This document shows positions 12,701-43,000 of a DNA stretch of 64,000 nt, in pieces (the first letter of the stretch is position 1; every line of letters begins with the position of its first letter). The notes beneath the pieces are model-generated. The model searched no databases. It worked only from the letters and a program-made list of their open reading frames with translations, and had not been told where the DNA came from. This DNA is from Bugula neritina (lineage: Eukaryota > Animalia > Bryozoa), in NCBI GenBank assembly GCA_964035545.1, contig OZ037766.1:31052773-31116772 (forward strand), given 5' to 3'. Both the position numbers and the translations under genes were made by a program.

Positions 12701-14160
12701 CTTAAGCAGTTTATAGTGAATTAAGTTTTAAAATTATTACCTTGAAGTGCCTGTTCGTTTGCATTCAAAAATTCTTTAATGCAAAATTCTGCTTTGAGAT
12801 TGTTTTTAGATTTAGCTAATTCCAGTGGAGTGTAGCAGGGGTCTTTATAGTTTCCTACATTCAGTATTTTCATTCGCTCAGTTGGTGAAAGGTTGTTCAA
12901 CATATATCTTAACTTCTCTGTGTTACCATTGATTCCAGCTGTTCGATGCACAACAGTATCACCTGCATCATTTTCTATGCTGACTACCTTGTAGACAGCA
13001 TCTACTCGCACTGCAGCATCTATCAGGTATGTGAATGCTTCCATGTGGTCACCTGATGCTGCCTTGTGCAAAGCTGTATTACCAGATCTATCCTTCACAC
13101 TGAGTATTTTGTACAAATCATCTGGTGGTACTGAGTCTATTATACATTTCAGTGTTTCTATACAACCTGTGCTCTGTCCTCTTGCTACACAATGCAAAAC
13201 ATATTCTCCCTCTTTATTCTGTGATAGAAAAAGCCTAACCAAATCTGTTGATGATACAAGATCGGCTATACATTTCACTACTTCTGTATGCCCCCTCTCT
13301 GCTGCCAGGTGTAGTAAAGTATTGCCACTAGATCCGCATATTTGAAGTAGTTTGTATAGGTCAGCTACTGGTACAGAGCTCAGAATGTATTTGGTTATTT
13401 CTGAGTGGCATTCGCTTGTTGCTAAGTGCAGAGCTGTATTGTTTTCCTGGTCCTGAATGCAGAGTAATCTGTACAACTCATCCGCTGGCACAAATTCCAA
13501 TATGCATTTAACTGTATCCATATGACCTTCATATGCTGCCCAGTGCAGACATGTCTTATAATTCTCAAAGCTCTGTATGCTGAGAAGGTTGTACGATTCA
13601 CCGGCTGGCAAATAATTCAGCATGAATAACACGGTGTCTGTGTGTCCTTCACGCGCTGCACATTGTACAACTGTATTCCTTCCCCACCCCAACGTGTCCA
13701 TCTCCAACAATTGACGAAGCTTATCTGATGACAGAGACTCTGATATACATTTTATGATCTCTGTATGACCATAAGTTGCTGCCATATGCAAAACTGTTAT
13801 TCCATGAATTTTTCGAACACGAAATAGTCGGTACAAATCATTTGGCGACAAAGCGTCTACCACACACTTGACAATAGCTGTATGACCTCCACTTACTGCA
13901 TGGTGTATAGATGTACTACCATACCTATCTTGTTTGTTAAGTAACTTACAGAAGCCTTCTGGAGACAAAGATTCAGCTATACACTGCATAGTATCTGCAT
14001 AGCAACTTCTTGCTATTCGCATTAGCAAAGTTTCCCCTCTCTTCCCCTTTTGCTTGAGAACCTGATACTTGCTAGACTCTGATATAGAAGACAACACTTC
14101 TCTAAACTCCTCTGGATTTTTCATGCAATTTTTCAGCTTGCTGTACTTGCTAAACGACAT
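9732..14160 (-). CDS. Ankyrin-repeat-caspase fusion protein (about 10-11 ANK repeats + linker + peptidase C14 p20/p10), 7 exons, about 787 aa
   Basis: Exons 14160-12741 (ANK, phase 1), 12472-12333 (linker), 11804-11607 (VYRMSAPVRGRCLIINN..RDGSETD), 11406-11187 (IMTHG..GKPKIIIIQACGG), 10925-10794, 10646-10537 (GYRSARHTRLGTWMI), 9875-9732 (QQPTC..KRKLFLFP..*). All junctions are phase-compatible. The caspase part is very secure; the ANK-to-caspase join relies on a weaker CAT|GTACAA donor at 12333. Confidence 0.85.
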
Positions 14161-14999
14161 TTCTATAACTCCCTCTCTGGTGGTGTCCAAGGCAAAATAA
14201 CTAAAGCAATCGCTCTTTTTTGTATTATTTGTTAATCAGTTATTGATTATTGGCATTCCAATTGTTGCAGTGCGTTGCTTTTCTTTTAGGCTGGCCACCA
14301 AACCCCCTATAATGTATAGCTGTTTACTTCTCATAGATGTGCAAAATCATTCTGTTTGTTTGATAATGATCGATTGCATGTGAAAAGCTTCGTTATAATT
14401 GTAATATAGCTTTTAATTATCATAATAGGCTGTAAAACTTGTGTGATGTTATATATAAATTTATACATTTCAATTCCTATATTAGAAAATTTAAAATTAA
14501 GTATTTAAAAATTGAATTTATTTTGGGAATTTTTAGGTATAAAAGTAAATGGATATTTGCTTCTCAATGTGACATGAAGAGGGTAACTTTTAATTAGATG
14601 ATCTCAATAATCACTGTCAACTTTTGCAAATTTGTATGTCAGTTTATCTGCATGTCTGGTGTTGATAATCTTTTACTAAGTGAAGTTGCCCCATCTTGAT
14701 TTTTTTAATTAAATTTTTAATGACTGCACTACAATATCCATAAAGGCATTTCTATCTAGTAGATATATATAATTTCTCAATAAGAATCTAAAAGAAATAT
14801 AAATTTAAAATGATTTAAGGGACATCAAACCTTTGTTAAACAATACAATTGTTAAAAGTCCCACAAATCACAACATTTATAAATATAGTGAAATTAAAAT
14901 AAGCATTGATGTTTTATTCAACAATTTAAAATTACTGCTGGCCAGTTATTTTTTAAACTACAACACAGCACAGGCCTATTAGTATGTAATGTATGTAAA

Positions 15000-19000: not shown

Positions 19001-22000
19001 CATGCAGGTGTACTCCTCACCAGTTGGCTGCCGGCAGCATTATTGGCAGCTTCTTCTAGCTGACATTTTGACTCGTAGGTTTTGACAATTCATTGTTGGG
19101 AGTTGTCCTCTCATTGTTCCTAAGTATGAAAAAAGGTCCCATGCTGATGTCTGTATATCTGATAATGACCGAATTTCACCTTTGGTTTAGGATTAGAGTG
19201 GTTAATATTTGTAGCAAGCCATCAGAATTATTCTATAAGCAGGTTGGAGGTAACTAATTGCAGCAGTTTGTGGGTCTCCAGTTTAGGTTGTAGTTTTGTG
19301 CCCCAACTTCAAACTTGAGACCCACAAACTGCTGCACTCAGTCACCCCTAACTCGGAGCTGCTTATAGAACAACTCAAACCACCAGGCTATCCTCTTAGT
19401 GAGTTTTTACCATATCTGAGATGGTTGCCAATAAATTTTATCTAGAGTTGGAATAACTTGATAAGTGACCAGTGTGAATAATAGATTATACACTGGAGAC
19501 AGGTGGATAACTGAACATGTGAATTGATTTCAGGTGCAGCATGTGCCCTTCTACGTGAAAAGACCAATCACCATTGACGCATCCTCCCACCCTCAACTCT
19601 TTGCTTATGCTAATGGAGGTAACAAACCAGCATCTTACAGCGTGGACCTATCACACCCCAGGTGAGTTATCTCAGCCAATAAGGAGGCAGCTTTGATAGA
19701 CACGGTGTTTAGAAGAGTTCAGAAGTTGCTGACCTTCTGTTGTCTGTCTCAACGTATAATTTACAAGTCTCAGACGTGTCAAGCTATTGATAGGTTCATT
19801 ATCTTTGTTATTTGAGATGTGTGCTACTCACTTCTAGATAATATCACACATGAGATTGTCTACCTGCTTTGCCTAATGCCAAGATAATGATAGTTTATGA
19901 AAATTTCACTTTCTTCGAAGAAATTTTGAACTATTCTCCTCATAAAAGGATAAGGCAGGTGAAATGTCTAATAAAAAGTAAAAAACTAGCAGAGAAAAGG
20001 CTTTAAATTATTGTTTAAAGCCTGCCCCACCCAATTTTCAAGTTAGTTTGGTATCATAAACAAGAATACTTTATATATTCCCTAATGAACGCTTAGTTCC
20101 AGCAGGATGTTAGACGTGAGCATATTTTCTAGGTTTGGCCGACCTAAGCAAACTGACCAACTATCTGAGCCGATCAACAGAGCTCAGAGTAAAAGCCTTA
20201 GAGATGTGTTTGAAAAGGCAATACTGAGAGGGGACGTGGCTATATATTCTCCTGGTATTTCCTTGAATACTTTGTTACATTCTCAGTCTATTTGTCTCAT
20301 AATATCTTGTGCTGTATTTTAGTAAATAGTTCACTTGTTTCCTACTTTATTGAAGATGAGGACAGTGGAGTGATGCGAAACCCCAGCTTCATCACAGCCA
20401 GTCTTCCTAGACCAGACAAGCATAAACAGAAGTCTGCCACAATTGGTGGTGACAACTACATGCATATAGGTGAGTGTAATATGTGTTAACGCATGCATGT
20501 AGGTGAGTATAATATGTGTCAACACATGCATGTAGGTGAGTATAATATGTGTCAACACATGCATGTAGGTGAGTATAATATGTGTCAACACATGCATGTA
20601 GGTGAGTATAATATGTGTCAACACATGCATGTAGGTGAGTGTAAATTTTGTACTTTCTACAACATATACTCTTTTGCAGTATTTAGTTTGACTTTTGTAT
20701 GACATTTTTTATTAAGTCAGTTCGAGCTTTATTTGAGAACTAAGTAGGCTTTGGGATACCATGCTGACACCTGGTATCTTATGCTGACACCTGGTATCAT
20801 ATGCTGATACCTGGTATCTTATGCTGACACCTGGTATCATATGCTGACACCTGGTATCATATGCTGACACCTGGTATCACATGCTGATACCTGGTATCAT
20901 ATGCTGACACCTGGTATCTTATGCTGACACCTGGTATCATATGCTGACACCTGGTATCATATGCTGACACCTGGTATCATATGCTGATACCTGGTATCAT
21001 ATGCTGATACCTGGTATCTTATGCTGACACCTGGTATCACATGCTGACACCTGGTATCTTATGCTGACACCTGGTATCTTATGCTGATACCTGGTATCTT
21101 ATGCTGATACCTGGTATCTTATGCTGATACCTGGTATCTTATGCTGACACCTGGTATCACATGCTGACACCTGGTATCTTATGCTGACACCTGGTATCTT
21201 ATGCTGACACCTGGTATCTTATGCTGATACCTGCAGGTAAAAGTGGTTACCGGAAGAGAAATGACTACTTTGTCGACAGCTCCAGCGACTCCGACAGCGA
21301 CAGTGGGAGGGGAGGGCAGCACAATGACGCGTACGTTGATGACGCAAGCAGCACTGTTTCCGACGAGATGTTCAAGTCTACCAGTGAAGGGCCCGCTCAT
21401 TCTACTGGTTCGATACTACTGTAGAACTTAGTCTACTTGTATTGTAATATTTATCTCTGGTGTAATATTTCTGGTGTAATATTTGTGGGTAGTGGATGTA
21501 GTGTACTATATGCAGTGTAATAATGTATTGTAGCATTTACAGTGTAATGTTTGTGGTAGAACATTACACCCTGTTTAGGTATGACTACTTAGGTATGATA
21601 GGAAAGTTTACTTAACTTGAGTGGACATGGCTTTTTCTACACTCTCAAACTCTACTCTACATTGTAGAAACACAAAGACCCAAACGGGTATCACTACAAG
21701 TTGATATTGTGTGTAACTGCATTTACATTATATAACGTTTCTTTTTCTTCTATACGTTATTACTCTGTTATGTTCTAATACACCCACCTTTATGCTATGT
21801 AATCTATACTGAATAACATTTACATTTATATCTGTTTGGAAAGAAGTAGATGATAAAAAGCTGTTACAGTGTAGCAGTAGTTCTGGAAAAGCTGGTTAAA
21901 TATATCAGCTGTAGCAACGATTTCTATTTTTCAAGTTTCGAATATTTTTTTATAAAAACTTACTTTGATAATAAAATTTTGAGATTGTCAATTATATAGT

Positions 22001-25000
22001 TACATAACACCATTGTTTGTCTCTCATTTTTCTCTATAAATGCTAGTTGAATCCTTATTCGCCAGTTTGTGAAAGTATTTTTTAATTAAGACTCTTTTGT
22101 AGAAGAGGAAGAGTTTCACGTGCAGCCACTGCCCCACCTTCTCGATGTGGAAGTGGGTCACCAGGCCGGGCGGTCAACTCTGGGGGGTTTCTTCAAACCC
22201 AAGTACCGTGACTATCCCCGTAACAATGTGCACCGCAGCTCTGAGCGAGAGCATAAGGAAACTATAGACTCCGGAACCAGTCGTAATTTCCGAAACCTAC
22301 ACCGAAACTCTATTTCTCTAAACAAGGGGGATAACTCCGTACACAGAGATGGGAGTATGTTAACACATAGACAAGAACCAAGTAGTGACAGTGGTAGGTT
22401 ACCACGAACTAAGTTACTTATGGGAGAAAGGACTCAGACGGACTTAGTGCCCAATATTGGTACAGACTGGGACAGTATAGCCGTTGAAACTCAGGGTAGT
22501 GCTAGACAGGGTCGGATTGAAAGGCGGGACAGTAGGGGTGGCAGTCACAGCCCTCGCATGAGTCATAACAAATATTTACCGAAGAAAAGGCGGAATTCAA
22601 GGCCTCGATCTCCCCGATTAACCAGTCAAGACACAGCTTTCAATGGTTAGTCACTAAAGATTAGTATCTCCTTCTACATGCAGTTCTCACGTCATGTTTA
22701 TAGGAATGTATATCATTTTCATTGTCACTCACTTGGCAAGAAGAGTTAACTTGGTAAGACATGGCTGGCATCTTTGCGTTTCTCTTAGACATAATTTGTT
22801 ATGCCCAATGAGCAGTGATATGTGATACGCATCTCTGTTCTTCACTGGACTCAATCTTCTTATTAATTGTTTCCATAGCAACCGTATTTTAGTCCAACAG
22901 CAACACACCCATAGCCTGGGTTTCTTGCCTATAGCTAGTAACGTAAGTTTGGATTGCGTTTAAAGGTCCCCTTACTAAAATAGCTTTTGGCAGTTGAAAG
23001 CCAGCGGTGGCTGTGTGATTGGCTGACCACCTCACTTCACTAGCTATCATAAGTTTGTGTGACTTGAGTTGTATCTTCTGTGTAGATCTAGACAGTATTG
23101 AGGTGCTCAGCCCCGAGATTCAGAGACGACAAAGTCAACCTTTAGCTGTACCGCAACATCAGCGTGAGTAGTAGTACTAGTAGTAGTAGTAGCAGTAGTA
23201 GTAGCAGTAGTAGTACTAGTAGTAGTAGTAGTACTAGTGGTAGTAGCGGTAGTAGTAGTACTAGTGGTAGTAGTACTAGCGGTAGTTCTAGCGGTAGTAA
23301 TACTGGCGGTAGTAGTAGTAGTAGTAGTACTAGTAGTAGTAGTAGTAGTAATAGTTGTAGTAGCAGCAGCAGTAGTAGTAGTAGTACTAGCGGTAGTAGT
23401 AGTAGTAGTACTTATAATAACTAATAACCTGCTACATTGTTCAGGTCAAGGACGTCTCACAGCCGAGGGAACTCCCTTGGAACAGATGGAGTTGGAAGAC
23501 CCGCCGTGGATGAAGGCAGAGATCAGAGAGAGGAGACGTCGGAGGAATAAGAAGATCTGTGTAGCGGTGGTCATTCTCACTCTGCTGGGGGTTGTGGCTG
23601 GGTTGGCGGTCCTCCTCTCTCAGGTTCTAGTTCCTAAGGCTGAGGTGTCCAGCACTTCCTTACAGCCTGGTGAGTCATCAGCGTTTTGTTAACTGCAATT
23701 TTATTGGTCATTTGTGTGCTAGCTTTATTGTAATTGGTTATTGTCATGCGTTTTGATAGACTGTGGTTGTGTTAACTACATCTGGATTGGGTAATGAAAT
23801 GTGAACTAATATTCTATTGGTTGTTCTTTTGTTGCCGTTTCTCTGCTATTCACTCACAAACCTGTGCACTGCTTATGACAATGTGGAATATTTAGTTGGT
23901 TTTCTCAACACTTTTCTGGAATCTTCACGTTAATATTTGGTAGTTTATTCTGGCTGCTGATTCTTGGAGAATATGTTTTAATCAAATAATCCAGTAAAAT
24001 GGTTGTTTCTAGTATATTTCACTGTTCCTCTACTGAAGGTAGCAATAAGGCCTCTTCAAAACTTATCTAGTTGATAAGTTATGCTATTACCTAGACTTAC
24101 CACCAGAGCAGTTATTAGAAACTTTGCTATTTTGGCTCTCTGCATGGCATAGAATTGTTTTGCAATACTGTTGGGTTATTTTGTAGTGTCAGTGATACAA
24201 ACCACAACCCCAGTTCTATCCACTACAACCGCATCCACTCTTGAAACTCAAAATCTAAGTAAGTGCCAACCAAGTATGATCATGCAAGCAATTGTTAGAC
24301 TTCCTAGTAAGCTAAGCAAACTAATATCTTTGTTTTAGACACTAAATGTTATTTCTCAGATAAAAACTTGCCAATATTGTATGCCTTATTTAACACGAAT
24401 GTCAGTTCTTATTCTATAATGCCGTTATTTTGGGAAAATGGCTGATGTCAGCTTAGAGTATTGGTGATTCCAGTGATTTAGAATATTGAGTATTCCAACT
24501 TCAATCCTACTGCCTTTTGGCACTGTATCTCTTATCCACATGTTGTTATTTTTCCACATATCATTAGGTTATTGGGTGTGCACGGGTTACACCCATTTAG
24601 TAATCATTTACCTAGATGATAATGTGAACTCTAGTTTATGCTAAGTATACCACTGTGTCAGTGAAGCATTAAGCGTAAACATTGATAATTTATGTTCCTT
24701 TTTCCTTTCAATTAAGTCTAAGCTTAGTAGTCTTACACAGTATAAGGAGTAATAATGGAATTTGTTACATCATAGATGTAAAAAATAAAACATTTTCAAA
24801 TGGAGCCTAAGCTTACTCTTCTCATGGTGTCAATGGAACGAATCAAAGTGAAAGTTGGCATTATTTTAGGTTTTTATTCGTTTTATTTTTGGAGTTGTTG
24901 TTATTGCTATCATAAATCTCTCTTAGTTTAGATTCAATATTTTTAATTCTGTGCCATCTTCAAGACTATCTAGGTATTTTAATTCGGGATATTTTCTACA

Positions 25001-28000
25001 TTGGAGTTGCCCTATTTTATAAAACAAGTATTGCTAAATAGTCATACTGCTACTTTTCAATAGTTGTTCGAATGTGTTTGTAATTTCTAGCTCTGACATT
25101 CGACGGCTCCATGAGAGTACTGAATAAGGAGTTTGAAGTAGCTCTACAAAATCTCAGTAGCCCACAATCTATAACCCTGGCAAATGACTTTTGTGGCACG
25201 GTATGTTATCCACTCTAACCTAATGTAAATGTAAACCTTGACCTTGCTTAGAGTGCTTATACTGCATAGCTGTGGCTTCTCTCTTTCAGATGAAGAATGT
25301 CTTCACACTGAATGCCTCCAACAATGACTTCACATATGACAACTGCAGTGTGACCAAGTTCATGTGAGTCACAACTCCTACTTTCTGTGTGTCTGCTGCA
25401 GCCTTTCTATGTTGATAACATCATCAGTACAGTTTTGTCTTTTGCTGGCATAATTCCTGCTATTCAAACGCTATGCTAGGTTGGTGGGAGCTTTGGTTAC
25501 TAGTATTGATTGTAGGCGCTATTTCGTGTGGGTTGAAGAGCTTTTATATCCACTGATTTTCTTATAATCATAGCCCAACTTCTTTAGTCGGGGAGAAAAT
25601 TTAGGCATCAGAAAAACACAAAAAGCCTAAATTTTTCTTACCAATTGTAAATAACTTTTATATAGTTTTGGGTTACAGCTTTTGCAATCTAGGTTTTGGA
25701 CAATTGCTTGTCAAAGAGACTCTTTTCAAATCTCCGCAATTTTGAGCCGTTGCAATCTTAAAGCTACCTGAGTGGATAAAAATGTGTGTTGTCATAAAAT
25801 TTAAAGCTTCACCTGTCTTCGATATTATATTTTTTTCTAAAATTCGTTATGATTGGGAGGTTTCATGCTGATTGGCTGCGAACTCTTAATACGATTAGCA
25901 CCAAACTCGCAATGACTGCTTTTCATCACCACGTAAATTCGCTAGAACCATCTCTGGGTGAGTATTTCTAGCTCTTTTGATCACTTCTACTCTTTGTGAA
26001 TGTGTAAATGTTGCTAGTAACTTCTTAGTGCAGTAGTTGGCTGTAGCCAGAGTCAATGTTTTAGTTATTACTTGTATTTAAACTCAGTCTAGATTCTCAC
26101 AGTTGTGTGCTGTTGTTTTTTTAGAAATGGCAGTGTGATAATAAAGTTTGAACTGTTGCTGTTGACTTCAGGGTTGCCTTCTACAAACTATAGTGATCCG
26201 ATGGACATTATAACTATGGGACACTTTTGCCGCACTAATGTGAAGGACAATTCTTCTTGCTTGTTTTATTATTCAGATTTTGAGCTAACCCTTTTCAACA
26301 CTTCATATGTCACATCATATAACAAATCTACTTTCCCAGCTTTGGTATCATCCAGCATGTCTCCCATTGCACCTCTCTTTTCACTGAATGCTTCAACTTC
26401 AACGCCAGCTCCATCTGCCCCTTCAGCTCCCTCAAGCACTTCTGTCAAATCCCATTTGATCAGCTCAATAGAACGAGTGACTATCACTCCAAAACATTCT
26501 AAAGCTTCTACTGAAAAATCTACCAATGTTCTCTCTACAAGGAAACAGTCAATTAATTCTTCATTTAAGTCTCCCAGTGAGCCAGTCAGCTTTTCAAGTT
26601 TGAATTTTCCAGTTACATCACCTAGCCTAAATTCAATTAAACCATCAACCTTCTCTGCCGTCTTATCCTCTCAGTCACTGTCAACTATGACACCTCCTAC
26701 ATTTCCACTGTCCTCACCTATACCTGTGTCCATGTCACACCCAAAATTTTCATTTGCTTCTGTTTTTCCTAAAACAACACCAAAACCAGTTGATTTACAT
26801 ATTTCATTTCCTACTCACCAAGCATCATCCCCCCACGATTTAGCATCATCTACCACAACACCACCCACTGCGAAATCCAAGACCGCTGATGCTGCCTTTT
26901 CAGTATCAACAAATTTGAAACACCTCAAACCAACGCCTAGTGTATCACTCACAACAAAACCACCTGCCAAACCAATTGATCGGCTTACCATCAGAATTTC
27001 CAGCCCTACACAAAAGCCAATTCAGTCTGGCAAATCAGTTGTTTTTCCGTCCACCAAATCTTCAAACTCTAAAGATAAGAACTATAATTATAAAACTGGA
27101 ATTGATCATTGGCCAATTGCTACTCCTCCATGGAAACGATATGACTCATATTTTCATTAATTAGCTTGACCAAATCTCACCATATATGACATTAATATAT
27201 ATTTTACTTTGTGCTTACTGTTCAGGTATTTTGTGACAATTTAGTAGATTTATTCAGTTTTAATATCTGTTTAGAAAATTATTAGTTTTTTTGTGTTTTT
27301 AAATTAACAATTTAAAATGTTTTTTTTTTGATTATTGTGATACTTATCAAGATAATTACCTTCTGTTGATCACTCAACAACTGTTTTTGTTTTTATATTA
27401 ATAAACTCTCAACACTCAACCATTGCTTCTTGTCTTGCTGCTGGGAACTGGCTTACATGTTGTGCTGGATGTTACACTGTTTGTATTCTACTAAACTTCC
27501 TAAATTGCTTTCTAACTAGCAAGGGAGCGGATGAATTCCTCGCTGTAATATAATTAAAAGAAAACAACTAAATTATGCAGGTAAGATTATCGCTGCAGTT
27601 TATGTTGGTCGTGTAAAATTACTTGTAATAATTTGGTTAAGCTCCCATTATTTCAAGCCCCTATTTTACTTGCTGTTTTGTAGGGAGGGCAGTATTGTCA
27701 TAGATTTCAACTTGAACATCATTGCCAGAGTGAAGGGAGCAAGTACATCTAACTCTGTTGGAATAGGTGCTGTTGATAAGGTAGATCAAGCCAGAAAAGT
27801 TAATCAAATAAAGCAATTTACCAACAAAGAGTGGGCAAAACCGAATCCCGGTGGCGAGAGCTGGGTGGTTGATAACGTGAGACTGGAGTTGAACACGACT
27901 GAAAGTGATAATGAGCAGCACATTGACAAGTCACTGAATGTAACTGAGTTACCAACTTCTAAAAAACTGAAGCTAACCGTTACTCCTGCACCAACTACAA

Positions 28001-31000
28001 ACCCTACCACTACTACTGTTTCAACTACCACTACCCCTATGCCTACTACCACTACTAGAGTTCCCTCTACAACAACATCAACTAAAGCCACTGTCAGCTC
28101 AACTACTATGGTGGCTACCACCCGTAGATCAACGACAACAACTACGTTCTTTACTACAACGACTGAATTGCAAACCACAACAACTTTATCGCCTGCCACA
28201 ACAACTGCATTGCCAACTACGACAACCATGTCACCAGCCACAACACCAACCACAACACCAAATACAACGCCAACCACAACACTAACCACAACAACTGCAT
28301 TGCCAACCACAACAACTGCATTATCAAGCAGGCCTCCATCAAGATCAGCTTCCACAGCAGTGCCAGACAGTGATTCTGTTGCATCAGAAGAAGTGAACAC
28401 TGAAGGTGTTATTCCATTTACTTCTTCCAGGGCAACAGCTAGCACATCAGTAGCCACACCTAAACCAGTAACTCAAAGCCTTACTACTTCAAGCAACGGT
28501 AGTTCTGAATGCTTTATACATTTCTTAACGGAAAATTGTAACACTGCTTATTATCAATGTGGCACCACTAACGACCAAATACTATGCAGGAAGGGTATGG
28601 CATTGACATTAGAACTCACTCCATTTCCTTGGAACGATTCAGCCTGTACTATTCCAATAAACATATCTGCAGATAGCTCGACTTCTCTGAACGACAGTTG
28701 TCCTATTGAACGACAGTTTTTGCGTTACAATTGCCCTAGTCTCTTACAGATGGCGACACTACCTATGAACAACCTCGACTACATACCAGATTGTTGCCCA
28801 GTTGACTATATATTTGACAAGAATAGTAATACTTGCGAAGAGTGCATAGATTGTAGCTCAGCTGAATCTGAAGATGATACTGCATAGAAAGTGTCGTATA
28901 TTTCTTGTGTAGAAATCTTCAATCTAACTTGTTGAACTGGTAGAATATTTATTCAATATTAAGTTGCCCATTTTTGAAATGTTAAATTTCTGACTTCAGA
29001 TTTCTATATTTATCAAAGTTAGAGGTTTTCATTATCATACAAATAACATACTGTATAATCATATTTTTAATCCGTCCTTCAAAACTACTTATCTTCTCAT
29101 CATGCTAACATTTATTTATGGTGACAGAATATTTTGTTAATGTTATGGTGAAAGTCACATATTTATATAACATATTTTGCGCATGATACATATCGATATA
29201 ATGCAATTGTTGGTAATGGTAACATGTAATTGCGTTAGGCATTCAGTATTTAGCCTTTACTCTTTATTTTTCACAATAATTTATCATGGTTATCTCAAGT
29301 GTGTTATTATTAAAAATTTTCTCCCTTTAAAATCGTAAAAACATCGCACAATTTATGACATAAGGTAGCTTATATTTATTATAGCATTCCAAATAATTCA
29401 ATATTAGCAAATACATAGAGTTTACACTTCTTAATATTGCATTTGTTAGTCAGGTAGATTTTCTATGTTCTGTTCAACTATATTTGTAAAATTAACACAC
29501 TTTGTAAGAACGCATAACAACACTTAAGCTAGTATTTTTAGCTTATTTTTTGTTATTAAAGAAACGTAAATTTTTATGGTGATTTTTAAAGCATCTTTGC
29601 TGAAATTTTTAATTTATTCTTTATGTGTAATAATACCTTGAAAACATATTTTATAGCGCAATAAATTGATGAGTGTTTAAATGTAATTGTGTCATGTTTT
29701 GTGAATAATTTTTTTCCAAGTTTTGAAAATTCGGCGGTAATATCTTCACCAACTGTGTTTATCAACACATATCACTTTCTAGGAACGAGCGTTATGCCTA
29801 TTTGGTGGCTACGTAAGATTCATAAGCAGAAAATATAAAATAAACAAAAAGCAAAAGTACATCGTATATTTTTACAATTAATTTCTTATTTACTTCATCA
29901 TATATTGGCATACCAAGCTCCCAACCTAGCTTAGCATATCTGCGAAATCATACATCTTTTGTATTAAATGTTGATGACTGTATATGTGGAATGCGGTGTA
30001 TCATGTAGAAATGGCAGCATCGTGATAGAATTCAGGTTAGAGTTTATGGCAGCACCCAACACTTCTCTATCCACTGAGTGCGAGTCAGGTGCCGACAACT
30101 GCACCGACAGTTGGACAGAAGAGAGTGTAACAAATCATTTGAAAACACATTTTGGTAAGTGGCAGCAATAGACCATGTAAAACTCAGCCAATCAGCGAAG
30201 TGTACCAGGTCAATGTCTTACCATTGTAACTGATATAAAATTCTGCAAGTTCAATTGCAAAATGCATGCTTCTAAAAGCTAGTTGTGCAACTTTTTTTTT
30301 CATGCATTATTTAATTTCATATCTTAAATTGATGACTCTTGAAATGATTTTTTAAAATGTCTAAATTAAGTATTTATAAAACGCAATTAAAAATTGCATG
30401 TCTAGAAAAATGACCTGGTACACTTTTGCAACTTAAGGCCAATTATTACATAAGGGTCATTTTACTTAATTTAGTACACACTCGAAATCTTCAGTTTTTA
30501 GCTATTTTTCACAATTTAGCTGGTAATGAGCATGGTTTTTTGGCCAAAACTAGTTAAGCACCAATAAATACACCTAAATAATCGAAGTTCTTTTTAATTT
30601 TGTTTCATTTCCCACGTTTTTCCCTAATTATTCAGCTAGTTTTGGTTACGGACCGTTACGGTTTTTTCGTAACGTCCGTGCATATAGAATATTAAGTGCA
30701 TATGACAATGACCTGTGCTTTAATGTTGGGGAATCCCCTCCCAGCCTTTGCTGTTATGCGTAATTAAAACCAGCACATAAAAATACCATGTATAGTAAAT
30801 TTCAATGGATTTGGAGCAAACTTTAATGTTAGGTCATAATTTGCTGGTGTGTACTAAATGAAGTAAACTGACCCATAACTGCCAGCTTAGTAGTTATTTG
30901 TTGTTGCAGCTTGAATGGGTTATTGTTTAGCATTGGAAGCTTGCAGTAAACATCTGTGAATTTGGTACATGACTTTGATTGGCTGGTTTTTGAATGGCCC

Positions 31001-34000
31001 TTTAGTATATGCATCTGGATGGCTGGGTAGTGTAGACCCGCCTACATCTAGCTAATGTACAGTAGCCAATCCACAGTAGTATTACGAAATTTCTGTTTAA
31101 CAAATGAAATATTCTGGTCATTTGTTTTGTACTTTACAATAGTAAATATTCTATTCAACTAGAATTTTATTGTATGTAAGCCATGGGAACTACTAAGAGG
31201 TTAAATCAACCACCCATGCTGGTAATATTGTAGCTCACAGTCATAGCAAGTCCACACCATATAAATATACACATAAGCTATTATGTGCAGCTTATGAATG
31301 CTGAAATGACCCAATTTCTTACTTTCAATTTGAAAAAAATTGTATTACATATTCTGCCACTTCTGCACCAGGAACTTGTTTTCCTTTTAAATTTTGAAAA
31401 TAGTAGTCAGTTTCTATAGCAGTCAACATCCACAATAAACAACGTAAGCTTTCAAATAAACTATTAATATATGAAATATTAGTGTGGAAACAATGTAATT
31501 TATTCATTGCTATGATGAAAAATTACAAGAATATTATATAAAAGCTAGATATAGATTTCTAGTAAAATGGCACAGGTAAAAATAACACATTTTTACTTCA
31601 AATTCTAAATTTCATCAGTCACCAATGGTGGCTGTAGATTACAGAGAGCACAGCAGACTATCACAATCTTGTCTAATAGAGGTGCCAACACCAAGTTCAC
31701 ACCTCCAGGACCATTTAAAATATTGAACTCCTTTATTCTTTTGATTGCTCTTTCGACATGGATTCGAAGGTTAGCAATCAACTTTGTTTGCAGTAACTGC
31801 ATTTTAGTCATTTGCAAATGGCCTCTTTTCCCAGGTGGTATGGCCAACTTGGCTCCAGCGCCTATAAGTTCTTCTTCAATAAGAAAGCCTCTATCTGCCA
31901 TGACCACATCATCTGGGTTTATGAAGTCTAAGAACCCAGAGTCATTAACTACACACTTGTCTGAGGCTCTACCTCCCATTCCATGCGAAATAAAGCAGAT
32001 AGTGCCCCTGGGTGTAATTGCAACCAAATACTTAATGGTGTTGATATTTTTATACTTACTCCATGTTAAATATTGAGCCAGCTTTGATTGAGGTTTGCAA
32101 ATGAATATTTCTGTGTAGTCTATAATGCACCTAATGTTAGCATATTGGCTTTGAAAGCTCAGAGGGATGTTCTTGTTGGAAAAACTAATAGATTGTTCAG
32201 TTCTCTTGCTAAAATATCTAATGTGTTTTTGAAGGTTTTGCTTGCTAGCAATCTAGAGATATAAAAAAGGCCAGCAAGTATTTGAAACTGTAAACCTTGA
32301 CGCAGCTTCATCAAAGCCAATAAAAGTTTATCTTGTCTTGTTAACTTTTTTCTGAGAGTGAGAACTTTCATCTTCAGACATATAAATCTAAATATAGTAA
32401 ATAAAGAATGAAAATTAAATTATGATTCAAATTATATGTATGTGCTAAATAAATTTTGTGCTTAGTTTGTATTCATTCAGCAGTTTTTACCCTCTGGTAA
32501 GTAGCTTCAGTTATATTTGCAACAACTATGAAGTTCAAGAACTGCTAGCTGAAGGCTTGACCCAATATATCACCATCCAAACAGAATGTAATGTGTGTCA
32601 ACATGTGTTACGTAATGCTGTAACAGTACATAATAAGCTAGTTGTATGAATACATGCTTTGAATGAAGTCATGAGTTTAAACAAATAGTGTTGACCAACA
32701 ATTATTACTTCATTTTATAATTATACTATAACTAATTCAAACCCATATTATTTCTAGAATAGCATTTAATAATGTTTGTGAATGAGTGAAACTAGTAACA
32801 AGTGTAAACCATTTTAGTTTTAAACACTGAGTTAGTTTCAGCTAAAAATTAGATTAGGAGGCCACTTTTGATAAGCTTTAAAATAACCAAGGAAAATTTA
32901 AGTCAAAACAATTTACTTTTTCTGGAGAAAGTGAGTCAATTTGTCCACAAATAAAAGACTGCTGCTTGTTTAAATAAAACCCTAAACTAAATAAGTCGAA
33001 GCATACAGATGACCACTGTGGTATTTATGAATATCTTACATAAAACAACATCTTTAATAAAAAATGTATGAATGATGCACTCACACTGCAACAAATTTAA
33101 TTAAAATGACAGTTTTACTACACATCAAATTTAATCAATGTAGAAATTTTAGCATAGTGAAACTTGCATTGTTTATTTGTAATAAACCATAGTCTATCTT
33201 TGCAATAAGAAAATCATAATTTTTACCTTGCTAAAAAATAGTATAGAGAACGTGTAGGTATTCCAGTATAGAATTTAGTTTGCTCATCTGTAGTGGTGAA
33301 AGTTTTAAAAACTTACTTTTTCAATAGTTGCTTTTTGTTTAAAGGTGGAACTTTTTGAGCCTTTTCTTCCAACTTTTGATTTTCGTCTATCAATAGAATG
33401 TGCAGATCTTTTTTTTGAGTAGTTGATGGTTCTGGTAACTCAGTTACTTCTGATGAAGTCTGACTATGAGGATGGCTGTCAGATGAGTTCTGTTGCTCTA
33501 TATCAGCTGACTCTGTTGAAGACGTTTTTGTTCGCTTCCTTCACATGTTTCATTAAAACCACTGTTTTTTGTGCGTCTTACATTATATGTTTTAGTGCGT
33601 TAGTAACCCAAATGAAAGATTGGAGTTGGATTTTGCTCAGTGGGCTGACCATCCTTATGATTATGATAGTCTGCTATGCTCTCTGTAATCTACAGCCACC
33701 ATTGGTGACTGATGAAATTTAGAATTTGAAGTAAAAATGTGTTATTTTTACCTGTGCCAATTTATAGAAATCTATATCTAGCTTTTATATAATATTCTTG
33801 TAATTTTTCATCATAGCAAGAACTAAATTACATTGTTTCCACACTAATATTTCATATATTTATAGTTTATTTGAAAGCTTACGTTGTTTATTGTGGATGC
33901 AGTTGACTGCTGCAGAAACTGACTACTATTTTCAAATTTTAAAAGGAAAACAAATTCTTGGTGCAGAAGTGGCAGAATATGTAATACAATTTTTTTCAAA

Positions 34001-37000
34001 TTGAAAGTAAGAAATTGGGTCATTTCAGCATTCATAAGCTGCACATAATAGCTTATGTGTATATTTATATGGTGTGGACTTGCTATGACTGTGAGCAACA
34101 ATATTACTAGCATGGGTGGTTGATTTAACCTCTTAGTAGTTCCCATGGCTTACATACAATAAAATTCTAGTTGAATAGAATATTTACTATTGTAGAGTAC
34201 AAAACAAATGACTAGAATATTTCATTTGTTAAACAGAAATTTTGTAATACTACTGTGGATTGGCTACTGTACATTATCTAGATGTAGGCGGGTCTACACT
34301 ACCCAGCCATTCAGATGCATATACTAAAGGGCCATTCAAAAACCAGCCAATCAAAGTCATGTACCAAATTCACAGATGTTTACTGCAAGCTTCCAAAGCT
34401 AAACAATAACCCATTCAAGCTGCAACAACAAATAACTACTAAGCTGGCAGTTATGTAATAATTGGCCTTAAGTTGCAAAAGTGTACCAGGTCATTTTTCT
34501 AGACATGAAATTTTTAATTGCGTTTTTATAAACACTTAATTTAGACATTTTAAAAAATCATTTCAAGAGTCATCAATTTAAGATATGAAATTAAATAATG
34601 CATGAAAAAAAAGTTGCACAACTAGCTTTTAGAAGCATGCATTTTGCAATTGAACTTGCAGAATTTTATATCAGTTACAATGGTAAGACATCGACCTGGT
34701 ACACTTCGCTGATTGGCTGAGTTTTACATGGTCTATTGGAGTAATAGTAGCAGTTTTGTGAAAGAATGTGTGTATGCGTGTTCGAACATATGTATTTGGT
34801 GTGTGTACACACACACACACACACAATATGTTATCTAGATAAATTATATAACTTGTGATTAGTGTTGGGAAAGTTTCAAAAGTCTGTCAGCTGTAATAAT
34901 TCTATAGGAGCTCATGTTGTCAACTTGATAATTAGTTTGTCTGTTAACTTTGCAGAGAAAGAGTCTCTTAAGGATGGAAACAACCTAACCTTTGAGAAGG
35001 CGAGTCTGAGTGTAGAGAGAAAGAGTCCTGGGAGAGCACCGACTAAGCCGTCTGTAACCACCAACTCTTCCGTGCCTACAGTAACAGATAGAGCTAATAC
35101 TACTACCACTACAGTAGCCACTACAGTAGCTACTACATCTACTCAGTCCGTTACCACAACACTTACCACACCTTCAACAACTACCTCTAATGCACCATCT
35201 ACCACTACTACTTTATTAGAAACCACAGAAAAACCCACTGGTACGGAAAATATAGCATTCTTGAGTTTTTGTACTGTGCAATGTGATTTCCTTGCTTAGT
35301 GTTTTTTGTACAGATTTATGAAGGAGGTTTAATCACACAGCTAAGTCACCAAATCTATAGCATCCAGATATTAATATTTTATTGTCAATTCTGTCACAAT
35401 TTCATTAACGAGTGTGTACACCTTGATGAGAGTTATCGGTTATTTTGCATTTTTATAAAGGCTAGTGGTGATAAAACCTCTTTTTTCTTAGTTTTATCAA
35501 GTTAAACACAAAAACATGTGATTGGGTTTTGCTAAGCTTCCTGTTGCCATGTAAGCTGTAGGTTTAATTTTGATTTAGTAAGTAGTAGGTAACATATTCT
35601 GTTCAGGTACATATTGAACAGGATAGAAAAAAGTGGTTGGAAATTGAAAGCTGATGGCAAATTTTGTTTGCTTATTAGTCATTGGCCAGTTTAATATTAC
35701 TACCATAGACTAGTGAAGTTACCATATATTTGAAGTTGCAGGGCTGGCCCTCTTCATACCCTCAATCAACAAGTTTGTAGCTTCAATGGAACTCTATGCT
35801 ATAGCTTCTACCTTTTGCTCTGAAGCGGTTTTCAATTTGCTGTCAGCTAAATTTATCACAGTTGTATTTCAGTAGTTGAATTCTCAACTTGTTGCAGCTA
35901 ATTCTGTGATGCTTCTAATCAACATTTCAGTTACTACCAGGGAGATCTCCATGAGCAGTTCAGCACAGACTCTGACTGACACTCACTCATCCACTCTGAA
36001 CTCTGTCACTTCTACTACTATGACCTCTACTTCTACCTCACCTGTCTTTAACAGTTTTGGTACCACTGGTGGTACTACTAGTGGTGGTACTACTGCTACT
36101 ACCACTGTAGATCTCACTACTCATTATCCTGCCAGTCCTACTCCCACTACTATCAGTGCAACCACTACTACCTCTACTCTCAGTCCGACTACTATTCCCA
36201 CTACTGCTCCCACTACTAGTACCGCTACTACTACTCCCACTACTAGTACCGCTACTACTACTCCCACTACTAGTACCGCTACTACTACTCCCACTACTAG
36301 TACCGCTACTACTACTCCCACTACTAGTACTACTACTATTCCCGACACTACTGCTACTACAACTACCACTACTCCCACTTATACTCTCTCTACTACTACT
36401 AGTACTACTACAACTACTACTACTGTTGCTACTACTACTCCCACTACTACTACTACTACCACTACTACTCCCACTACTACTACTACTCCCACTACTCCCA
36501 CTACTACTCCCACTACTACTCCCACTACTACTACTACTCCCACTACTACTACTCCCACTACTACTACTACTACTCCTACTACTACCACTACTCCCACTAC
36601 TACCACTCCTATGACCACCACTACTACTACTACTCCCACAACTACTTCTACTACTACCAGTGCTCCTGCTACTACTACACTAACAGGTTAGAAAGAGCTG
36701 TTTTATTTTTCTGCTGGTGTGGGGTCATGGTTGAGGGTGCTCTTCCTTATCTGGTATCAGAGCGGTACCGTCTACTGTACGGCTCTCTTACCATTGCATA
36801 CCTCCATTTCATTATTTCATAGAGGTTTGGTTTGTTTCCAAATAACCTTTGGTTTAGAGGGGAAAATTGCATGATTTTGCCTTGGCCTGGACTCCAATCA
36901 CAACTAAGTGAATAGTGTTCAATAAGTGAGTAATTTACAGACTGGCTTTACATCGGTATCTTCTTGAGCTATCACCCAACCTTCAACTATTCTTTCCCGT

Positions 37001-40000
37001 TTCGATCATTTTCTTATTTGATTATGGAGACGGTATAGTCAGCTTCAACTGGTAGTTTCATACATTATTTTGTTAGCCAAGAACAATTTATACAGATTCA
37101 CAGTGCATTTCAATTCAAAGCAGTTTCAAGCTGTAAGTGTATGAAACTGTGGTTTTTTTATGCAGAGTTTTTATACCCCCTAAACACACTTTGCCGTAAA
37201 GTAGACTGTAAAGTAAAATGTCAGCCATTTTTAATGTATCCGGACCGAAGTTTTCAAAGTCTGCTATTGGGTACGATATGACACCTCATTGGACATTTAT
37301 ATTCAATGAGTTGATGAGAACGTCTCATTGTTCAATAGAAGTCTGACACAATTTTTTTTAATCCATCAGTGCTTGATCCTGACGTACCGTAACTTCGTAC
37401 GGTCAGCTCGGACATTGTGAAAAATGTCTGCCATTTGACGATACCGTTGACGTTACGCAAAGTGTGTCTAGGGGGCAAGTATGTATATGTACTAAATTCC
37501 TAGCTGAGAGTATTTCTTACAGCTTTAAAACCTTGAGACCGCTCTTTCTTTTCATAGAGTATGTGACATGCTTCTACTAATATCACTGTTCGCACCTACT
37601 TTCTTCCATTTTTATAAGAGTATATACCATAATACAACCTAGAAAATAGTTCTACACAATGGCAAGCAATGTTTTTACTCTTGCGTAGGGTGTGCTGCCG
37701 ATGGTAAGATAAACGCTGGTATGTACGAAGACGAGGAAAATTGTACTAGCTACTACGTTTGCTATGATGACATAGGTCCTAGAACTAATAACTGCTTACC
37801 AGGCACTATGTACAAAAAGGAGACAGAACATGCTGGCGGATGCGTAACGTAAGTGGCTGCTCTGTTACATGTGATATATCTTTGTCGGGAAGTGCCAACC
37901 AATGAAAATATCTTGACAAGGGTCTGTTTGGTGCTGTTACAATTACTCATCTTGCACACAATGGCAGGTGTCTGCCAGGTGACAGTTACTTACCGTGTAC
38001 CCACAATGGCAGGTGTCTGCCAGGTGACAATTACTCACCATGTACCCACAATGGCAGGTGTCTGTCATGTGACAATTATTTACCATGTACCCAGAATGAC
38101 AAATGACAGTTTCTCATTCTGCAAACAGTGACAAGTGTCTGTTCATGTGACAGGCACTTGTCATTATCTGTCACTTGACGAGTGTCTGTCATGGTCATGT
38201 GACACTAGTGTAAGCACAGTGACAGGTGTCTTTCTGCTGTCATGACAGTTACTTGTGTCTATCACGTGACTTACCCACCATAAAGTCGCAAGTTAATATA
38301 TGTGTTTGGACTTATTAAAATATTTAATATTTTTACTTAACCTTCACTAATTTGTACAACAATGTGTCATTCTAGAACTTGCTGGTATCTGTTTGTTCAT
38401 GTCTCATTCCATTTGAATCTTATGACATATTAGATTTGTCTTCTCATTTTAGCTGTGATACTAAAGTTTGCCCCACATGCATCCCCCTTTCTACAGAATA
38501 TGAGGTGAGACTCACTACTAACGACAAGATAAATATGATTTCAATTTATACTCTTTTCTTTGCTCACAATATTATATACGCAGCATGTCACATGGTGTTG
38601 AACTTTACTTGTATGGTTAGATGTAATATATACTCTACAATGTCGGTAAGTTGTCTTGCTCTTCTACTCTACCTTCCATTTGTTTGTCTCCGCCCACTGT
38701 AAGCTTACTATATACTGCAGTCTATGTCTCCGCCCACTGTGAGCTCACTATATACTGCAGTCTATGTCTCCGCCCACTGTGAGCTTACTATATACTGCAG
38801 TCTATGTCTCCGCCCACTGTAAGCTTACTATATACTACAGTCTATGTCTCCGCCCACTGTGAGCTTACTATATACTGCAGTCTATGTCTCCGCCCACTGT
38901 GAGCTTACTATATACTGCAGTCTATGTCTCCGCCCACTGTGAGCTAACTATATACTGCAGTCTATGTCTCCGCCCACTGTGAGCTTACTATATACTGCAG
39001 TCTATGTCTCCGCCCACTGTAAGCTTACTATATACTGCAGTCTATGTCTCCTCCCACTGTGAGCTTACTGTATACTGCAGTCTATGTCTCCGCCCACTGT
39101 AAGCTCACTATATACTGCAGTCTATGTCTCCGCCCACTGTAAGCTTACTATATACTGCAGTCTATGTCTCCGCCCACTGTGAGCTTACTATATACTGCAG
39201 TCTATGTCTCCGCCCACTGTGAGCTCACTATATACTGCAGTCTATGTCTCCGCCCACTGTAAGCTTACTATATACTGCAGTCTATGTCTCCGCCCACTGT
39301 AAGCTCACTATATACTGCAGTCTATGTCTCCGCCCACTGTAAGCTCACTATATACTGCAGTCTATGTCTCCGCCCACTGTGAGCTTACTATATACTGCAG
39401 TCTATGTCTCCGCCCACTGTGAGCTTACTATATACTGCAGTCTATGTCTCCGCCCACTGTGAGCTAACTATATACTGCAGTCTATGTCTCCGCCCACTGT
39501 AAGCTTACTATATACTGCAGTCTATGTCTCCGCCCACTGTGAGCTTACTATATACTGCAGTTTATGTCTCCGCCCACTGTGAGCTTACTATATACTGCAG
39601 TCTATGTCTCCGCCCACTGTAAGCTCACTATATACTGCAGTCTATGTCTCCGCTCACTGTGAGCTTACTATATACTGCAGTCTATGTCTCCGCCCACTGT
39701 AAGCTTACTATATACTGCAGTCTATGTCTCCGCCCACTGTAAGCTCACTATATACTACAGTCTATGTCTCCGCCCACTGTAAGCTCACTATATACTGCAG
39801 TCTATGTCTCCGCCCACTGTGAGCTTACTATATACTGCAGTCTATGTCTCCGCCCACTGTGAGCTTACTATATACTGCAGTCTATGTCTCCGCCCACTGT
39901 AAGCTTACTATATACTGCAGTCTATGTCTCCGCCCACTGTGAGCTTACTATATACTGCAGTCTATGTCTCCGCCCACTGTAAGCTCACTATATACTGCAG

Positions 40001-43000
40001 TCTATGTCTCCGCCCACTGTGAGCTTACTATATACTGCAGTCTATGTCTCCGCCCACTGTAAGCTCACTATATACTGCAGTCTATGTCTCCGCCCACTGT
40101 AAGCTTACTATATACTACAGTCTATGTCTCCGCCCACTGTAAGCTCACTATATACTACAGTCTATGTCTCCGCCCACTGTGAGCTTACTATATACTGCAG
40201 TCTATGTCTCCGCCCACTGTGAGCTAACTATATACTGCAGTCTATGTCTCCGCCCACTGTAAGCTTACTATATACTGCAGTCTATGTCTCCGCCCACTGT
40301 AAGCTCACTATATACTGCAGTCTATGTCTCCGCCCACTGTGAGCTTACTATATACTGCAGTCTATGTCTCCGCCCACTGTGAGCTTACTATATACTGCAG
40401 TCTATGTCTCCGCCCACTGTAAGCTTACTATATACTGCAGTCTATGTCTCCGCCCACTGTAAGCTCACTATATACTGCAGTCTATGTCTCCGCCCACTGT
40501 AAGCTTACTATATACTACAGTCTATGTCTCCGCCCACTGTAAGCTCACTATATACTGCAGTCTATGTCTCCGCCCACTGTGAGCTTACTATATACTGCAG
40601 TTTATGTCTCCGCCCACTGTGAGCTCACTATATACTGCAGTCTATGTCTCCGCCCACTGTAAGCTCACTATATACTGCAGTCTATGTCTCCGCCCACTGT
40701 GAGCTCACTATATACTGCAGTCTATGTCTCCGCCCACTGTAAGCTTACTATATACTGCAGTCTATGTCTCCGCCCACTGTAAGCTTACTGTATACTGCAG
40801 TCTATGTCTCCGCCCACTGTAAGCTCACTATATACTACAGTCTATGTCTCCGCCCACTGTGAGCTTACTATATACTGCAGTCTATGTCTCCTCCCACTGT
40901 GAGCTTACTATATACTGCAGTCTATGTCTCCGCCCACTGTAAGCTCACTATATACTGCAGTCTATGTCTCCGCCCACTGTGAGCTTACTATACACTGTAG
41001 TCTATGTCTCCGCCCACTGTGTTCTGATCCATTCTGGAATGTTACTTGCCTGTGGCGCGTAGTGCTGAGGTATTCTCTGCATCGTGAAGGTGTTATCTGC
41101 AATACAATTACTGCAGATAGTTGTTACAGGTGCTATAGCTTGCAGGTGTGCTAGGTAGTATATTATGTAGTGTATGCTAGGTAGTATATGATGTAGTGTA
41201 TGCTAGGTAGTATATTATATAATGCTGCTAGGTAATATATTATATAATTTACATCAGCCTCATTGTCAAACTGGTTGGCAAGGGTTACTACAGCGATAGT
41301 GGCTATCTGTAGAAAATTATATTATGCAGTATTTAGCAACTGTGTAGTGTGCAGCTACGTAGTTTATACAGGTGCTACACGCTATCTGTTGCTATTCACT
41401 CAATTACTACTGTATCTTCACACAGTCAACATTCTCAGCATGAATATGTGTTCTGGAGTTGCCTTCTTCCTGCTGTGGAAAAATAAGAAAACGGTTTTCT
41501 AAGATTTGTGGCAATTTTTCTGTAATTACTTTTTATTAGTGATGGAGATGCATACATGCATTATAATAATGTGTTTGGAGGACTTAGTGTTTATTTAGTG
41601 TGTAGATCAAACCTCAAATTCGGTACAAAATTACGCTCCAACAGCTTTTCTAGATTGTTTGTGATTGGGTGAATCATCAGTCTATATGGCGCTCAAGGCT
41701 TATTGATTTACTCGTATAATCAATAATATCTTGTTGGTGGTTTAACTCTGACTAATGGCTCCTTTGGCTCAACTACCAACTCAATTTAGAATGGGTTCCT
41801 GAAATATATTTAAAGCAACTGGAAACCAAAGCAACATTCTTAGGTTCTTCAGTGCACAGGCTTGAAAATTAGTTTTTGAAAAATGTAGGCTAACCAACTT
41901 CAGTTTTATCAGTCATCAGTGTTTACCTTTCCTGACATTAGCAATTATTATCTCTGAGAGAAGACAACTTCATTATAGTTGTGCTCCCAGCTGTATGCAT
42001 AATATACTTATAATAATGAGTTTGGAAGTGTAGTGGCTGTGTTGATAAATAATGTCATCATATGTTACTATAGTGACCAGTAAACAAGGTGTATCCAGGT
42101 AATGCCGTGCTCACTAATACTGCAATGCTTTCACCACATTGTGTGATAGATGTGAGATTTTTCTGCATTATCTAATCCTTGCAATATCCTAATATATACT
42201 TGATGTGTAACTGTGTAACTACGTGAATCCAGTGCCGTATAATTTCACTTCTAACTAGTTCTGCTAGGCAGCTGCCACTCCTAACACATATTATTTGCTG
42301 CCTGAATTCTTCACCGCATCTTACACTCTGCACTTTATTTAAATTTCCTATTCCGTTACTTTACACTTCTGTATCAATAGACTGGTGTCACCACAGACAG
42401 GTTTTTTGTGAATTAAACAGGCTTTCTTTACGTTTTTATCTAAATAACTTGAATTTTCCTAACTAAGACAGAATTCAATAAGTTGTTGTGAAACTCAATC
42501 AAATTATGAGTTGTTGTTGAATCTAGTTTTGTAGTTTTACAAGTTGTTGGCAAAATTTGGGAGTTGTCTTGTGTTGAAATAAAATTATTATACATTGTAA
42601 ATTGAAATACTATAAATGATTAATACAACTGAAAGCATAATTTCTTAATTTTTTGAAAACTGTAATCTCACTGGAATGACAACTCCAATATTAATTGTAC
42701 TGTGATGTTATTTTACTGTTAAACATAAGAATGTAGTTTTTATCTGTGTGCTCTTCACCAAATGTGACACATCATGTGTTTTCATTGTAGATTTGCGCTA
42801 CAAGTTACTTTTTATGTTTGTGTTTCCTCCTATCTGTGTGTACCTGAAATAGTTTTTTATTTCTGAGTATGTGACTGTGCTTTAGTTATTCAGTTTGGTG
42901 CTACTTTTCACTTGGTTACTGCACGCTTACTTTGCACTATGCTGCCTGCGTCTGTATGCTCTTCTTTGATTAAATCATTTAATGTAACAATTTGCAGAGT

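Follow-up and report, generated by a model that had tools for sequence, protein, structure and literature searches.

A predicted long-range intronic helix and recurrent unannotated 5' splice-site signals in the alternative 3' region of a bryozoan SEA mucin gene

In the 3' variable regions of the Drosophila genes PGRP-LC, CG42235 and Pip, mutation has shown that RNA pairing activates a cassette (PMC6191721), while in Dscam1 exon 6, 14-3-3 zeta and Mhc the exons concerned are internal and mutually exclusive, with one conserved selector per exon (summarised in PMC6071210). Here, we describe a single-copy bryozoan gene for a type II SEA-domain membrane mucin, found in a 64,000-nt stretch of Bugula neritina (the window, whose coordinates are used throughout unless an L-numbered contig is named), in which a predicted long-range helix joins an intronic element near the last shared donor (the dock) to an element upstream of the most distal alternative exon (selector C). 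The closest precedent is the Drosophila 3' variable regions, not Dscam1. As in PGRP-LC, CG42235 and Pip, a common 5' part is spliced to tandem 3' cassettes, a donor-proximal element would pair upstream of a downstream cassette, cassette choice is coupled to that of poly(A) sites and pairings are lineage-restricted; the differences are that there is a single conserved partner here, that an extra unannotated donor precedes each terminal exon and that the gene is lophotrochozoan and known here by its sequence.

The alternative region, on the plus strand, starts from the last shared exon (25290-25363), which encodes the middle of the SEA domain and ends at a phase 2 donor (GT at 25364) that can be joined to three tandem homologous 3' cassettes. 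Exon A (26125-27160) opens with x-GSVI, is Ser/Thr-rich and ends in a stop codon followed by a poly(A) hexamer at 27400. Exon B (27684-28887) opens with x-GSIV and encodes a Thr-rich stalk and a Cys-rich C-terminal domain before its stop codon, after which its 3' untranslated region runs to ~29650-29860. Exon C (30009-30154), which also opens with x-GSIV, is internal and splices to 34956 and then to exons that encode Cys domains of the chitin-binding type. C alone is followed by a donor; A and B are terminal, both ending in stop codons and trailed by poly(A) hexamers, which refines the original prediction of Dscam-like docking and selector sequences choosing among three SEA exons: since A and B end in poly(A) sites, their exclusivity requires no docking system, and the question becomes how the distal acceptors are reached. 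With Dscam1 exon 6, 14-3-3 zeta and Mhc the locus does share an upstream intronic element complementary at long range to sequence just before an alternative acceptor, but here A and B are terminal, selectors do not come one per exon and the candidate for B is unconserved. There is no internal mutually exclusive cluster and there are fewer than two conserved selectors for the same dock bases; the helix therefore falls outside the docking/selector class.

The dock (25469-25510, +106 to +147 from the shared donor) and selector C (29897-29944, with its core at 29912-29938, 71 nt before acceptor C) form a predicted duplex of 39 pairs at -46.3 kcal/mol. All three segments of the original prediction were found in place, at the distances it gave for the selectors (73 nt from acceptor C and 33 nt from acceptor B), and its pairing of ~30 bp (25470-25506 with 29902-29935, -39.5 kcal/mol) is contained in the longer duplex. 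Selector C is the dock's best partner across the 64 kb (-42 kcal/mol vs. -34 for the next window), and no local helix joining the first intron to any part of the alternative region ranks higher. Compared with 2,600 random pairs of 200 x 200 nt taken 1-10 kb apart, it lies far beyond chance, being beaten by two, both from transposon terminal repeats. In a shortened three-way construct, predicted pairing of the dock core is 0.95 and 0.83 for the C arm and 0.0 for the B candidate. Both arms are single-copy in the genome, a 216-Mb assembly, which rules out that they are pieces of a high-copy dispersed repeat. An origin as transposon ends is ruled out as well, because the looped region contains ancestral exons present in all orthologues and the actual transposon (30166-34738) sits downstream.

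Evolutionary comparison rests mainly on B. neritina assembly GCA_010799875.2 (~10% diverged, the sister lineage below), whose ~90% identity at the locus places the window's source as a sister lineage inside the B. neritina complex. Against an intron divergence of 8-11% between the two, a single base differs in 41 nt of the dock (T25501C, which turns U-G into C-G) and a single one in 44 nt of the C arm (G29917A, accommodated by a bulge shift), leaving the energy of the dock:C duplex at -44.2 kcal/mol in the sister lineage vs. -44.3 here. The helix coincides with a weak 3' splice site of C (29989-30008), which has 7/17 pyrimidines in the window and 9/17 in the sister lineage, compared with 12-13/17 in three helix-less species. 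Of the original interpretation, what is supported is a non-repetitive helix that is kept in the sister lineage and associated with a weak C acceptor; that pairing with the dock helps this weak tract is a predicted effect. Across the explanations that we considered, we regard it as quite likely that the dock:C helix is functional.

The same cannot be said of selector B (27639-27650), the element proposed to compete with selector C for the dock core, to which it is complementary in the window lineage only. It does pair 12/12 with two G-U, as described, in a duplex of modest strength (~-17 to -19 kcal/mol) that ~2% of random pairs equal, as do 4% of 300-nt windows. In the sister lineage, 4/12 of its bases have changed, the duplex weakens from -18.7 to -11.6 kcal/mol and predicted pairing drops from ~1 to 0.17, which rules it out as a conserved element; the dock and the C arm are kept in that lineage, with no two-sided compensatory change found. 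Mutually exclusive pairing of several selectors is possible in the window lineage, not in the sister lineage, where B is nevertheless abundantly spliced, so that competition from B is unsupported. Before exon A no strong selector was found, which agrees with what had been noted.

Expression was read from contigs of three probable RNA runs of the sister lineage, in which depth is a rough measure and rare variants are dropped. Contigs joining the shared exon to B and others joining it to C are present, at B:C contig depths of 157:339, 82:49 and 45:24, which makes B and C both major isoforms, C despite its distal position and weak acceptor. No junction from the shared exon to A appears in the three runs, and the A region is covered solely by unspliced contigs of lower depth; this does not support the idea that A is the default when the dock is unpaired. 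Because its frame is kept open in both Bugula lineages (344 codons) and in all orthologues, A is probably a real exon, rare or stage-specific in its use. The order A, B, C recurs in two further bryozoan contigs, L004 and L012, and in Watersipora subatra (L011 50311-63734) the array is enlarged to five exons (A, B1, B2, B3 and C), of which four acceptors are represented in RefSeq isoforms. Watersipora A, with 458 codons, is absent among RefSeq isoforms X1-X7.

A second signal lies ahead of the terminal exons. Only two donor-like sites occur in the 4.6-kb alternative region, each scoring higher than the shared donor and retained in the sister lineage: one before A (25955-25963, GT at 25958, 167 nt before acceptor A), with counterparts before A in three distant bryozoans, and one before B (GT at 27581, at 103 nt from acceptor B and 181 nt past the poly(A) hexamer of A), held in a predicted local hairpin (27566-27638; z -2.8 and -3.1 in the two lineages). 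Between B and C, Bugula has no strong donor. When 330 nt upstream of each acceptor were searched, sites of at least 5 bits were found 80-310 nt ahead of 9/11 terminal-exon acceptors from seven lineages, as opposed to 0/24 constitutive acceptors of the same gene (Fisher P 8e-7) and 0/4 C acceptors (P 0.011), with the proviso that these sites are homologous or co-duplicated and thus non-independent events. For the remaining two acceptors, a strong site is found further upstream. Outside the window, strong sites before terminal exons lie at L011 50088, 52591, 54413 and 56524, at L004 1185 and 1992, and at L012 2654 and 4030. Counting GGTRAG, which needs no matrix, again yields 9/11, vs. 10-12% of background windows in Bugula and Watersipora and at most 27% in two short, GC-richer loci, and this count also matches one C acceptor. 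In Watersipora, an identical 9-mer donor occurs four times on the sense strand of 91 kb, one each before A, B1, B2 and B3. Since the flanking introns do not align between families, retention of these donors suggests selection. The unannotated donor signal is shared by more lineages than the helix, and it may be the more ancient of the two controls.

What these donors may do can be framed by two known mechanisms. Intrasplicing, or nested splicing, in protein 4.1R (10.1101/159350) is a precedent for an intronic donor, ahead of a proximal acceptor, that could use this acceptor up and leave a distal one for the real donor; such an intronic site is present here, although, unlike in 4.1R, no nested junction was seen in the three RNA runs and the array has one site for each terminal exon. 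U1-bound 5' splice sites also regulate polyadenylation, inhibiting it in human immunodeficiency virus type 1 (HIV-1) and bovine papillomavirus (BPV) and activating it in the intron enhancer of calcitonin/calcitonin gene-related peptide (CT/CGRP) (PMC2874999). Similarly, in Bugula, L004 and L012 a donor consensus lies 170-185 nt past the poly(A) hexamer of the preceding exon, but, unlike in HIV-1, BPV and CT/CGRP, no poly(A) hexamer lies upstream of the donor before A in 3/4 species. The donors could serve in nested splicing at the expense of the proximal acceptor, in U1 control of cleavage or in making unproductive mini-exons. A silencing role seems most likely, since it would explain why C, which has its own donor, lacks such a site and why the nearest exon is the rarest. 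Other roles were rejected: the donors do not belong to first exons coding for signal peptides (neither an in-frame start nor a hydrophobic leader is present), they are not recursive AG|GT sites (three are without AG), they are not generally masked by a hairpin (Bugula B alone) and they do not always trail a poly(A) signal (untrue before A). Just upstream of the donor at 27581, a highly conserved possible mini-exon (27520-27580; 61 nt, 60 nt in the sister lineage) has a fair acceptor and an in-frame stop, and could be a poison exon.

Taking both signals together, we lean with modest confidence towards a joint reading in which a lineage-specific helix activates the distal exon and conserved donors silence the terminal ones, in coupling with poly(A) choice. 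Three ectodomains would be displayed on one membrane anchor by choice of 3' acceptor, a choice tied to polyadenylation where A and B end, the junctions being those observed for B and C and, for A, an expected one. In Bugula, the single helix (+106 to +147 with the arm 71 nt before C), which is predicted and conserved, would loop out A and B (4.4 kb) and bring the weak C acceptor to ~180 nt from the shared donor, which may raise use of C. Because it can form only once the polymerase has passed the B poly(A) region, pairing would compete in time with splicing to B and with cleavage, and the helix would act as a lineage-specific distal activator, not as a two-selector switch. The conserved donor before each terminal exon would restrain this exon, either by engaging its acceptor over a short intron or by letting U1 block cleavage until it is spliced away, and transcripts could thus reach the distal exons. 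A more ambitious version, which we consider rather doubtful, is a two-layer code in which a decoy donor, co-duplicated and kept across families, silences each terminal exon, while dock/selector pairing activates the chosen acceptor and turns over between lineages, in an array that can be expanded (three exons in Bugula, five in Watersipora). Several points weigh against the joint reading. The helix was initially spotted by eye out of a large set of conceivable pairings; of the 41-nt intron windows, 23% are conserved to the same degree, and for the two arms taken jointly p is only ~0.05. Only two informative lineages carry the helix, in which no two-sided compensatory substitution was found, and neither L004 nor L012 has an equivalent, nor does one precede Watersipora C. 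The position of the 3' arm, between the B poly(A) site and the C branch region, could alone explain why this arm is conserved. As for the donors, the pattern was found post hoc, the scoring matrix was a generic one and junctions from either site are absent from the three RNA runs, whose contigs drop rare variants.

A true competing docking/selector system, with one dock and fast-diverging selectors before B and C, seems unlikely to us. It would account for the B element of the window lineage, which exceeds the background of shuffled sequences (weakest-link P 0.008) and is predicted to pair in a construct of two parts, and such pairings have been reported to be lineage-restricted (PMC6191721), but in the sister lineage B is well spliced with the element disrupted. 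Watersipora speaks on both sides. An unbiased scan there peaks at +131 from the donor, the position of the Bugula dock (combined z -5.3 vs. shuffles), with partners before B1 and B3; these are, however, weak (-12 to -18 kcal/mol, with 9-24% of real background windows doing as well), pair with adjacent rather than shared dock bases and have no strong counterpart before C, so that the signal is a lead only. L004 and L012 gave no signal in the scan. Between families, neither the dock nor the selectors show sequence conservation above chance, the dock regions of Bugula and Watersipora aligning no better than chance.

We find it similarly improbable that the complementarity is incidental, due to chance or to a small inverted-duplication relic, with choice set by splice-site strength, poly(A) kinetics and proteins, and the arms kept for other reasons (a GU-rich element past the donor on one side, poly(A) downstream and branch-region constraints on the other). 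This would fit with the absence of the helix from three distant orthologues, with the weakness of the conservation test and with the antisense strand pairing nearly as well (-40.2 vs. -44.3 kcal/mol), as the helix consists mostly of Watson-Crick pairs. It has to contend with a dock:C score beyond that of 2,598/2,600 random pairs, with arms that are neither repeats nor transposon ends and lie at regulatory distances from donor and acceptor, and with two sister-lineage substitutions that both preserve a helix coinciding with the weak C acceptor. That the helix acts mainly on 3' end processing, hindering cleavage by pairing beside the distal poly(A) site of B so that C rises indirectly, strikes us as very improbable. 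The geometry is suggestive, since the distal hexamer of B (present in both lineages) and its probable cleavage site at ~29859 (together 29839-29860) lie ~40 nt upstream of the 3' arm, which starts just beyond a U-rich stretch, and Bugula has no strong donor between B and C. On the other hand, this cleavage site comes from a single RNA contig that ends there with two untemplated A, which is weak evidence, the helix leaves the hexamer and most of the U-rich stretch uncovered and B has further hexamers upstream.

If true, the joint reading would extend pairing-steered choice of 3' cassettes to another major animal clade and would suggest that such pairing can arise to offset a weakened acceptor. 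In the searchable literature, which leaves out most subscription journals, we found no report of docking-type pairing in a lophotrochozoan, bryozoans included, or of a repeated decoy-donor array, and none for a SEA mucin, as the original prediction had supposed. The conserved donors bear on the general question of how a shared donor bypasses strong proximal terminal exons with their own poly(A) sites, in a region that is compact (4.8 kb).

The assignment of the gene was based on protein searches made exon by exon and on domain calls on the database isoforms of its orthologues, where PF01390 (SEA) was matched; the searches run found no close paralogue, and two further protein searches returned no orthologues at intermediate distance. 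The encoded order is a cytoplasmic N-terminus, a hydrophobic anchor (in exon 23446-23670), a SEA domain split across small exons and the alternative C-terminal parts, which together include the SEA domain with its GS[VI] motif, the transmembrane segment and the Ser/Thr-rich stalk of a membrane mucin. Every alternative exon, orthologues included, begins with x-GS[VIT], and in Bugula A, B and C x-GS[VI] completes the SEA motif in the same phase. SEA domains of the MUC1 type undergo autoproteolysis at the G/S bond; here, the motif alone is seen. The Cys-rich C-terminal domain of B (28490-28887) has eight cysteines that are invariant across nine bryozoan sequences and has no Pfam match. The DNA transposon at 30166-34738, 11 nt past the donor of exon C, has terminal inverted repeats of >1 kb that are 93-99% complementary and contains a DDE_Tnp_4 fragment; it is missing from the sister lineage, and in C-isoform pre-mRNA its two arms would pair into a large duplex. 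Upstream of the gene there are two ankyrin-repeat open frames on the minus strand (6708-8003 and 12721-14190), and its introns contain minisatellites at ~38680-41020 (40-nt unit), 20760-21235 (20-nt unit) and 20458-20640 (33-nt unit), the last of which repeats the donor of the preceding exon.

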